Source: Hemiscyllium ocellatum
Lineage: Eukaryota
Direction: 5' to 3'
Assembly (NCBI RefSeq): GCF_020745735.1
Contig: NC_083435.1
Span: 36,977,090-37,041,089 of the forward strand
DNA: 64,000 nt
Part shown: in pieces, positions 44,331 to 60,926 of the stretch
How positions within the stretch are numbered: position 1 is the first letter of the stretch
Layout: every line of letters starts with the position of its first letter
Program-made: the position numbers and the translations under genes
Notes under the pieces: model-generated
The model's database searches: none
Seen by the model: only the letters and a program-made list of their open reading frames with translations
Told to the model about the DNA's origin: nothing

Positions 44331-44366
44331 TGAATCATGAAGAAACTGCTCCAGAGATATCAGAAG
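44331..44366 (-). CDS. Gene B exon 7, cytoplasmic exon 2 containing the stop codon
   Basis: Strong acceptor ttgtttttattttctcag and donor A|gtaagt, 36 nt. Encodes TSDISGAVSS with TGA at 44337-44335, resembling the TSD-Ser-rich class I tail. Confidence 0.72.
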
Positions 44367-59300: not shown

Positions 59301-60926
59301 AAAATCTGGGGGGGGAAGAGACTGTCACACACCTCCTTCTGGAATGTGCCTATGCAGAGGAAGTCTGGAGAGGAATGCAGTGGTGTTTGTCGAGGTTCGT
59401 CTCGAGCAGCGCCGTGACGCGGGACTCCGTGCTCTATAGCCTGTTCCCCGGGACGCACACCGAGACGAACATCAACTGTGTCTGGGGGATCATCAACTCG
59501 GTGAAGGACGCTCTCTGGGTGGTCCGAAACCTGTTGATCTTTCAGCTGAAGGAGTTAACCCTGACTGAGTGTTGCAGACTGGCACATTCCAACGTCCAGG
59601 ACTACGTGTTGAGAGACGCGCTGAAGCTTGGGGCAGCTGCCGCCAAGGCGCGGTGGGGAAAGACCACCATGTAACATCTGCCTGTCTAAAGAAGAACAGG
59701 GGCCCCATGCAGTCGTTTGGGCTATGTTGGCGCCTCAGTTAATTATATGGACATATGAATGAGAAAGGCACAGACCTGTATGTAACAATGATAATTTCTG
59801 AGCTGTGTATGTAAATGTTGACATATGTACGGCATGACCAAATGTACAGACCATCAAATTATTTTATGAATAAAGTATATTTTTGAAATAAAAAAAAATT
59901 TTGTTAAACCTATGGAAAACATTTTGACTGCACCGTGTCTACAATTTCCTATTTCGGGCGCTCAAAAGATATGAAGAAGCGGGGTGAATGTTGGTGGTGC
60001 ACTGTGGGTGGAAAAGGCTCACAGAGATAAGGGAAGCATCGAGGCCTATTACATCTCTCCCAGCCCCGGGACCCAAATGCCAGTGTTGGGGAATGAATGA
60101 GGTTTTATGATGAAAGGATGAAAGGGGACAACCAATAGAGAAATTCAATCAGCCACATCTTACCAGATGTCTGGTTTGTCCTCTTCATTACTGCACTCAT
60201 TGTTTCCTTTGCTATGTTTGCACGTATTTTTACCCGATCTGTGAGATAATCCCAGAAATTCACATTGAAGGATTCTGCCATGAACTGCTGTCTGGGGATG
60301 CACTGTTGGGTTTTACTGTCACGAGAAGCTGTTATAACTCCATTGACCGTTGCACTGTTTGTAATCTCAGGAAAATCCTTAATTCCAGAAACAACTGTGT
60401 AAATCACAGTGATTACATTAGTCCCTATAAAGCAAACAATGAAAGCAGGAAGTTACACAACACGAAAATAAACATCATATTAATAACCTGGGCCACAAAA
60501 CCAGAATCACATCACAGATCCCAGGGACATCACTAATGTGAGAGATTGCCCTCAAAATCACTTTCAACTTGTTATATCTGTAAAGGTCAGGCTGAAAACA
60601 ATTACACAGACTTTCAGCTGGTCAAAGTGAGGCCCATCCACACAGTGACAATCTCCAATAATCCACCAAATTATAACACTGTCAGAATCCTGTCTGATAT
60701 AATCAATAGAATCAGATTCAACTGGGTCAGAATTAGCTGCTGCAGCCTCTCAGAACAGGGAGTAAACACAGAGTCAGGGTCACTCGGATACTCGATAGAA
60801 TCAGTGTGGACACAGGGAGAGGCTGGGACACAATCCAGGGATTGGATATTAAACAGAAAATCACTAACCTGGAACAGGAACTTGGCATAAATGGAAGAAA
60901 AATATTGAAAGGACTCTCCTGCCCAT
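44335..60926 (-). CDS. Nonclassical MHC class I heavy chain gene B (7 coding exons, 352 aa)
   Basis: Coding lengths 58+261+276+279+120+33+32 = 1059 nt, one frame, all phase-1 GT-AG introns. Protein: MGRRVLSIFFFHLCQVPVP|GTNVITVIYTVVSGIKDFPEITNSATVNGVITASRDSKTQQCIPRQQFMAESFNVNFWDYLTDRVKIRANIAKETMSAVMKRTNQTS|GIHTFQQIATVEVSDDGSIKTSMRFGFDGKDFISLEPDTMRWIASNPIAVMTKEKWESDDSWNNYWKRHLEELVVEYLNRYLEAGKDYFKRK|IQPKVFISRREPNGQDKPLTLSCLVTGFYPVDIEVTWLRNGEVMSETQSSRVRPNHDGTHQIQKEIEINAGDEDQYSCQIEHSSLAEGKLYQW|ENLKSNWLHSHLGSLIASMVILLAVIVGIFGIIIWKRSRR|GSPSGTYTTAP|TSDISGAVSS*. Lineage (UBA/UCA/UDA/UEA etc.) cannot be assigned without a phylogeny. The alpha3-TM link spans an N gap. Confidence 0.88.
44702..44998 (+). 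mobile_element. V-SINE-type element in gene B intron 6
   Basis: Head ggggcagcacggtggctcagtggttagc. Absent from the homologous intron at about 8430. Confidence 0.9.
45054..45086 (-). CDS. Gene B exon 6, cytoplasmic exon 1
   Basis: tttctgcag|GT...CCC A|gtaagt, a 33-nt symmetric phase-1 exon encoding GSPSGTYTTAP. It carries the class I cytoplasmic Tyr (YxxA). A conserved paralogous copy is at 8348-8380. Confidence 0.85.
45530..45649 (-). CDS. Gene B exon 5, connecting peptide and transmembrane segment
   Basis: Acceptor tgtgtttcag and donor G|gtaaga, 120 nt. LGSLIASMVILLAVIVGIFGIIIW followed by the KRSRR stop-transfer. Confidence 0.88.
45770..46400 (-). mobile_element. Penelope-like 5' region fragment
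   Basis: Similar in character to 17400-17790. Confidence 0.45.
46427..47060. mobile_element. Probable solo LTR
   Basis: TG...CA ends and composition like the LTR at 2627-3330. No clear TSD. Confidence 0.45.
47539..47754. other. Assembly gap (216 N)
   Basis: The N run begins 4 nt into the intron after gene B alpha3, where paralog A has a (GT)n tract. Confidence 0.99.
47759..48037 (-). CDS. Gene B exon 4, alpha3 Ig C1-set domain
   Basis: Acceptor cccctttcccatcacag and donor TGG G|gtaa, 279 nt. LSCLVTGFYP...W...RPNHDGT...YSCQIEHSSL with both Ig cysteines. Confidence 0.96.
48154..48429 (-). CDS. Gene B exon 3, MHC class I alpha2 domain (no cysteines)
   Basis: Acceptor tcatcaccgacag|GA and donor A|gtatat, 276 nt. 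Motifs GIHTFQ, FGFDGKDFISL, W, TKEKW, YL.AG are typical of shark class I alpha2. Confidence 0.95.
48922..54321 (+). mobile_element. Nested CR1-in-CR1 block in gene B intron 2
   Basis: Outer truncated CR1 (48922-49690 plus tail 54219-54315). Inner near-full-length CR1 (about 49692-54218) has ORF1 remnants (CRKC..coiled coil; esterase LYKKD.LHLNWK), endonuclease and RT. CTACCT lies at both ends, and paralog A has the empty site at about 14570. Confidence 0.88.
52012..52140 (+). mobile_element. Penelope-derived mini-insertion with hammerhead core
   Basis: About 90 bp nearly identical to 12371-12463. AAGAACTTTC occurs twice before and once after. Confidence 0.85.
54790..57480 (-). mobile_element. 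Stack of CR1 LINE fragments
   Basis: [36 protein letters not shown]; tails at about 55380 and 55000. Confidence 0.88.
57500..57950 (+). mobile_element. Penelope-like GIY-YIG fragment
   Basis: Homologous to 21893-22450. Confidence 0.8.
59305..59898 (+). mobile_element. Tx1/L1-clade LINE 3' end
   Basis: QWCLSRFV..SAVTRDSVLY.LFPGTHTE; AATAAA and polyA. Same family as 38740-40795. Confidence 0.92.
60164..60424 (-). CDS. Gene B exon 2, MHC class I alpha1 domain
   Basis: Acceptor ttgtttgctttatag|GG and donor G|gtaaga, 261 nt. Class I alpha1 motifs: PE, DS..Q..IPRQ.F, FWD, and C-terminal KRTNQT with the conserved N86 sequon. Confidence 0.92.
60869..60926 (-). CDS. Gene B exon 1, signal peptide
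   Basis: ATG at 60926 gives MGRRVLSIFFFHLCQVPVP, then G|gttagt phase-1 donor, about 450 bp upstream of alpha1. Basic N-terminus plus hydrophobic core. Confidence 0.7.

Follow-up and report, generated by a model that had tools for sequence, protein, structure and literature searches.

A nonclassical MHC class I heavy-chain gene lies on the minus strand of the window, the 64,000-nucleotide stretch of Hemiscyllium ocellatum DNA analysed here, and it belongs to a large family, confined to sharks, whose members have already been predicted in related shark species. Most likely, the window carries exons 2 to 7 of one gene whose body is undamaged, and the true leader exon, of the MLLILFSISLCFS-VSP type, most likely lies just past the window end (beyond 64000). 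A leaderless body, a UEA-type family, an ancestral long intron and an off-window leader together form the best explanation and, in our judgement, a fairly probable one.

Exon structure of the gene body and the long second intron

All six body exons, from alpha1 to the tail (Table 1), are open, in phase 1, bounded by GT-AG and located on the minus strand, with 333 codons intact. The initial annotation had proposed seven phase-1 exons encoding a 352-aa ORF; the seven stretches do join into a 1059-nt, 352-codon open frame in which each junction is GT-AG and phase 1, and these stretches and junctions were confirmed, while the leader exon among them was not supported. With one domain per exon and phase-1 junctions throughout, the gene has the layout of a class I heavy chain, and its domain order is that of the class I superfamily, namely alpha1/alpha2 of the MHC_I type, a C1-set alpha3, a transmembrane (TM) segment and a short tail. 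Pfam assigned alpha2 to MHC_I (4e-19) and alpha3 to C1-set (1e-18), and alpha2 matched 501 PDB class I chains.

Table 1. Features of the class I gene in the window and of the whale-shark locus L001 used for comparison
Feature	Position	Strand	Remarks
Cytoplasmic exon 2	44335..44366	-	stop TGA; GTAAGT donor 4 nt past the stop
Cytoplasmic exon 1	45054..45086	-	SPSGTYTTAP
Connecting peptide, transmembrane and stop-transfer exon	45530..45649	-	98% identity to P0152 and P0153
Assembly gap	47539..47754	.	N run wholly within intron 4 (alpha3 to TM)
Alpha3 exon	47759..48037	-	C1-set Ig domain, Cys pair kept; GTAA donor at gap edge
Alpha2 exon	48154..48429	-	Pfam MHC_I; PDB alignments; alignment to nurse-shark UAA 6LUP
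Intron 2	48430..60163	-	11,734 nt; ancestral long intron, enlarged by LINE insertions
Alpha1 exon	60164..60424	-	87 codons, phase 1; acceptor TTTATAG, donor GTAAGA
Leader exon of the initial annotation	60869..60926	-	ATG-to-GT mini-ORF in intron-1-homologous DNA; probably not the real first exon
Dead canonical leader exon with 5' flank	37285..37338	+	MLLILSFPSLCFP*VSPD; TGA stop, donor GT lost
L001 leader	9260-9311		
L001 alpha1	about 10556-10816		window alpha1 exon and acceptor align here
L001 alpha2	about 22354-22629		
L001 alpha3	about 22748-23026		
L001 TM	from 31194		

The comparison DNA came from a single relative locus, the whale-shark L001 (the gene of P0166). Its intron 2 measures about 11.5 kb versus 11.7 kb in the window gene, and six blocks of the window intron are collinear with it. 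The similar length of the whale-shark intron and the collinear remnants argue strongly that alpha1 and alpha2 are exons of the same gene, and the earlier joining of the two over 11.7 kb is borne out to the extent that DNA by itself can show. The intron had also been described as filled with repeats, among them stacked LINEs, and LINE reverse-transcriptase (RVT_1) fragments were indeed found in it on both strands, at 53191-53514 (+) and 56058-56366 (-). A second copy of the gene in the window (copy B; the gene described here is copy A) has the intron parts adjoining alpha2 in common with it, and the segment 48905-54317 is extra in copy A. Judged from these DNA alignments, the 11.7-kb intron is inherited in the family and was enlarged by LINE insertions. 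A long inherited intron of this kind means that ORF-based scans show only fragments of family members.

The only N run of the window falls between alpha3 and the TM exon. The alpha3 exon ends with ...CAGTGGG, and the following GTAA forms the last letters before the gap, which starts 4 bases past the donor. Since GTAA precedes the gap, neither the alpha3 exon nor its donor is truncated, and the gap falls within the intron, where it interrupts no reading frame. Beyond the gap, window 45804-45400 (the TM exon with its flanks) is homologous to L001 31040-31435, in the expected order. Placing alpha3 and TM in one gene fits their order, strand and phase, and the gap leaves physical continuity unproven from the window. 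An assembly chimera, in which the TM and tail beyond the gap come from a different paralog than alpha1 to alpha3, could find some encouragement in the fact that the nearest relative varies by domain, with alpha1 and alpha2 closest to P0154 of Chiloscyllium punctatum and alpha3, TM and tail closest to Hemiscyllium P0152 and P0153. However, gene conversion, seen directly between the two copies in the window, is expected to produce such a mosaic, and the differences between P0154 and P0152/P0153 are small in TM and alpha3; with order, strand and phase all consistent across the gap and the TM region placed as in the whale-shark gene, we regard such a fusion as extremely unlikely.

Family membership and the binding groove

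The alpha2 domain was searched against 1.84 billion representative proteins, and shark proteins were recovered at 61-78% identity, which have the same uncommon type of alpha1 and likewise an alpha2 without cysteines. The best match was P0154, a 350-aa prediction from C. punctatum with 90% identity over 325 residues (87-90%); by domain, the identity was 87% for alpha2, 94% for alpha3 and 88% for TM, and alpha3 is 94-97% identical to family members. The alpha1 domain had been called very divergent; its Pfam match is weak (0.06), but it is 92% identical to the alpha1 of P0154, and its form GTNVITVIYTVVS is typical of the shark family. In two maximum-likelihood trees, the window protein was sister to P0154 (support 99/98 and 100/98), and the family formed a clade supported by 100/99 to 100/100, with a stem branch of about 1.05-1.1 changes per site. 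This family branches outside the group made up of classical shark UAA, of shark and ray sequences that are UAA-like, and of class I from bony vertebrates. A search with P0154 returned about 100 proteins at ≥53% identity, all of them from sharks and spanning six orders (Orectolobiformes, Carcharhiniformes, Lamniformes, Heterodontiformes, Hexanchiformes and Pristiophoriformes); no ray or chimaera protein reached this identity in the database searched, and the nearest ray match was 33% identical and belonged to a separate lineage. At least 12 distinct 90% clusters per genome were found on one chromosome-scale contig in both C. punctatum and H. ocellatum, and the window itself holds the two copies together with class I fragments. 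The window gene's own protein was not among the matches of the alpha2 and P0154 searches. Clustering, alpha1 type, cysteine-free alpha2 and TM/tail motifs all assign it to the 'F10 alpha chain-like' family, and the proposed membership in a multigene shark nonclassical class I family is therefore upheld by its position beside P0154, by the family clade and by the roughly 100 shark relatives. With P0154-type predictions it has in common the domain order, the lack of alpha2 cysteines and the tail motif SPSGTYTTAPTS; in short, it is an ordinary additional member of a known shark family.

Which lineage this family represents had been considered undecidable, and the choice can now be narrowed. UAA or UAA-like identity is excluded by the separate 100/100 clade in the tree, and the type of the nurse-shark 'nonclassical' QGX07421.1, at only 37% identity, is another lineage. 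Sharks possess two expanded Ib families, UBA, which is derived from UAA, and the older UEA (PMC12562908). All MHC-Ib genes were located within the MHC, with multicopy UEA in an MHC-Ib cluster, and the supplements label the genes only as 'MHC-Ib', without lineage names (PMC10751288). The UEA lineage is that of Almeida et al. (2021, J Immunol 207:824), cited in both PMC10751288 and PMC12562908. The family studied here resembles UEA in being large and multicopy, in being found only in sharks and in standing deeply apart from UAA, and no protein named UEA was among the matches of the protein searches. UEA is reportedly absent from rays and chimaeras, and it is also said to lack the termini-binding residues, five of which the window gene keeps, so that it may represent a sublineage. 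By elimination and by its distribution in sharks alone, the family most likely corresponds to UEA, the multigene lineage already published.

Compared with UAA (nurse-shark 6LUP; Triakis scyllium P0119), the fold, the exon plan, the glycosylation site at N86 and the alpha3 Ig domain are alike, whereas the identity is only about 33-35% and the two fall in separate clades. Relative to 6LUP, R84, T143, K146, W147 and Y171 are retained in the groove, the N-terminal pocket is changed (Y7V, Y59F and Y159H), and alpha3 carries a 5-residue insert. The alpha2 disulfide is absent (C101V and C164V); Val occupies both positions here as well as in copy B and throughout the family. The gene thus lacks three features of classical class I, namely the full termini-binding set, the C101-C164 disulfide and grouping with UAA. 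The predicted structure of the sister protein showed a class I fold (pLDDT about 76-89 in alpha1/alpha2), and the structures that matched it best were chicken BF2, MR1 and shark class I, none of them favoured over the others.

The gene would encode a type I membrane glycoprotein that adopts the class I fold and whose conserved alpha3 would pair with beta2-microglobulin. The groove would probably clamp the C-terminal end of a ligand, and a free peptide N-terminus would not be bound in the classical manner. Given the kept C-terminal residues, the rebuilt N-terminal pocket and the missing alpha2 disulfide, a non-standard ligand is proposed, and this would probably be shown to T or NK-type receptors. 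The family as a whole has a half-classical groove without the alpha2 disulfide, and one more copy adds little on ligands or receptors. Xenopus XNC/uba, chicken YF/Rfp-Y and MR1 are likewise multigene or specialised class I-like systems with altered grooves, and MR1 and chicken class I rank among the best matches in both structure and sequence; nevertheless, there is no specific kinship with any of these systems, all of which the shark family lies outside in the trees.

The first exon

From Heterodontus to Chiloscyllium, the family leader is near-invariant, MLLILFSISLCFS(R/W)VSP, and P0154-type predictions start with MLLIL(L/F)SISLCFSRVSP, whereas the window gene offers only a non-homologous mini-ORF. 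The leader peptide of the initial annotation, MGRRVLSIFFFHLCQVPVP, differs at five family-invariant leader sites, including the start; in the mature window protein, only three family-invariant sites are changed, as against zero to four in other members. When scored against the family leader, both as DNA and as protein, the proposed leader remained at background level. Window 61232-60032 aligned with L001 9689-10944 (intron 1 and alpha1) at 78% over 1269 nt, and the proposed leader sits in the intron-1 part of this alignment. At the position of the window's ATGG, the two whale-shark copies have ...CCCTGG... and hence no start codon. Both the scoring and the whale-shark alignment reject the proposed leader as a diverged homolog of the family leader, and it most likely arose by chance as an ORF within intron 1. 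The earlier descriptions of the gene as 'apparently intact' and 'functional' both depended on this leader, whose homology is to a relative's intron 1 and which does not resemble the conserved family leader, and neither was sustained. A weak leader-like stretch, 60824-60786 (SLSLCPH*FYRVS), scored 30 against a background of up to 27; it too falls within the DNA homologous to intron 1 and was treated as a chance similarity.

Starting at the ATG at 60926, the gene might have a lineage-specific leader born from intron 1. Its ATG is flanked as ACCATGG, the encoded peptide combines a charged start with a hydrophobic core, and a phase-1 CAG|GTTAGT closes the exon 444 nt ahead of alpha1. However, an out-of-frame ATG lies 7 nt upstream, the closest relative P0154 has a canonical leader, and T-rich DNA fairly often yields hydrophobic mini-ORFs followed by a GT in the right phase (a rough estimate, not computed); combined with the intron-1 homology to two whale-shark copies without the ATG and with the lack of resemblance to the family leader, this makes such an origin very unlikely. 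For annotation in general, an upstream ATG-to-GT mini-ORF needs to be checked against the conserved leader of its family.

The canonical leader was not found on the minus strand at 60425-64000, the roughly 3.6 kb from upstream of alpha1 to the window end, where repeats make up part of 61.25-64 kb. Within the window, a canonical leader occurs only as the dead exon on the plus strand (Table 1), and both findings count against an off-window leader. Window 37240-37370 (+) is 87% identical to L001 1227-1097 and 79% identical to L001 9227-9345 (the whale-shark leader with its 5' flank). Two readings bear on this arrangement. On the one hand, the leader may simply lie farther upstream; the C. punctatum sister gene (P0154) covers about 21 kb, whereas in the window gene alpha1 and the stop delimit 16.1 kb, so that an intron 1 of 4-5 kb could be accommodated. 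On the other hand, a rearrangement, for example an inversion of roughly 37.4-61.25 kb, could have cut the body from its promoter and canonical leader and left a young pseudogene that is as yet free of disabling mutations. The canonical leader and 5' flank at 37240-37396 (+), where the whale-shark homology stops, and the remaining intron-1 homology, which begins at about 61247 on the minus strand, make a layout that fits an inversion breakpoint within intron 1. The stop and the lost donor of the relic leader and a tip branch about twice that of the sister would also agree with it. However, in the whale shark about 280 nt separate the two homology ends, and because the window lacks this piece of intron 1, an extra deletion would be required; no inverted repeats were found at either putative inversion end (37.4 and 61.25 kb). 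Orphan class I fragments are common in the window, so that a solo dead leader needs no tie to the window gene, and the six exons with their 333 codons are intact, with invariant sites kept as in annotated members. We regard the severed gene as unlikely, and the off-window leader is favoured over it. Even less probable than the intron-born leader without rearrangement is a combination of the two events, in which an inversion of about 24 kb, with a breakpoint in intron 1, removed the canonical promoter-leader unit and left the dead leader at 37.3 kb as its relic, and a former intron-1 stretch with a new ATG in ideal context and a reused phase-1 GT became the new first exon; if true, a workable signal peptide drawn from a former intron would keep the gene alive.

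Sequencing-run data and comparison of the two copies

A word-sharing search of a sequencing-run index gave no signal specific to the gene, and none of the runs it returned was registered as RNA. Two data sets of the same organism, probably RNA, shared 0.59 and 0.37 of the alpha2-alpha3 words and only 0.10 of the leader-alpha1 stretch, and runs from other species shared 0.27-0.40 of the alpha2-alpha3 words; these words are common to paralogs and species and are therefore uninformative on the window gene. At the family-invariant sites, the body exons are conserved to the degree of annotated family members. Between copies A and B, alpha2 has a dN/dS of 0.51 at a dS of 0.42, alpha3 shows only 7 differences in 279 nt, and the identity in intron 3 is 95.5%. 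At the sequence level, the similarity of alpha3 and intron 3 between the copies reads as a pattern of gene conversion.

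Copy B and its relation to gene A

Besides gene A, the minus-strand nonclassical MHC class I-like gene, the window contains a second class I copy (copy B), represented by open alpha2 and alpha3 exons, and no alpha1, TM or tail exons of this copy were found within the 64 kb. Copy B differs from gene A at 7 of 279 nt in alpha3 and is 95.5% identical to it across intron 3, whereas the alpha2 proteins share only 66% identity (dS 0.42). Judged from these alignments, the shared stretch, combining near-identical alpha3 and intron 3 with diverged alpha2, is a gene-conversion tract. An orphan homologue of gene A tail exon 1 lies upstream of the copy B alpha2 exon.

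Features in the window and in whale-shark locus L001 (L001 in its own coordinates)
Feature	Position	Strand	Remark
Orphan homologue of gene A tail exon 1 with flanks	8061-8439	+	76% to 44995-45412
Copy B alpha2 exon	15086-15361	+	open, AG/GT kept
Copy B alpha3 exon	15479-15757	+	open, AG/GT kept
Dead canonical family leader exon with 5' flank	37240-37396	+	TGA stop, donor lost
LINE 3' part (ORF2 C-terminal region), three copies	38741-39898, 59309-59897, 62797-63986		85-92% identity
Consensus GTAAGT donor	44325-44330	-	4 nt past gene A stop codon
L001 family genes, n=2	1-1230, 9260-31337	-, +	head to head

The 3' end of gene A

Because the GTAAGT donor follows the stop codon, gene A may have an additional 3'-UTR exon. 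Beyond the stop, 43657-44119 is conserved in the 3' flank of copy B (18041-18499), and its counterpart is read as protein in the C. plagiosum prediction P0011.

Leader remnant and repeats

The dead leader, which has GAT where a GGT donor would be expected, is 87% identical to a whale-shark leader region, and a repeat begins directly after it at 37397. It is either an orphan or else the severed leader of gene A. In L001, a whale-shark locus with family genes, the leaders lie ~8 kb apart (1182-1132 on the minus and 9260-9311 on the plus strand).

The three LINE copies, one within gene A intron 2 and one upstream of the gene, end at one common point. A short interspersed repeat that includes 44788-44827 lies in the intron between the gene A tail exons, and recurs at 37607-37735 and 31272-31515.
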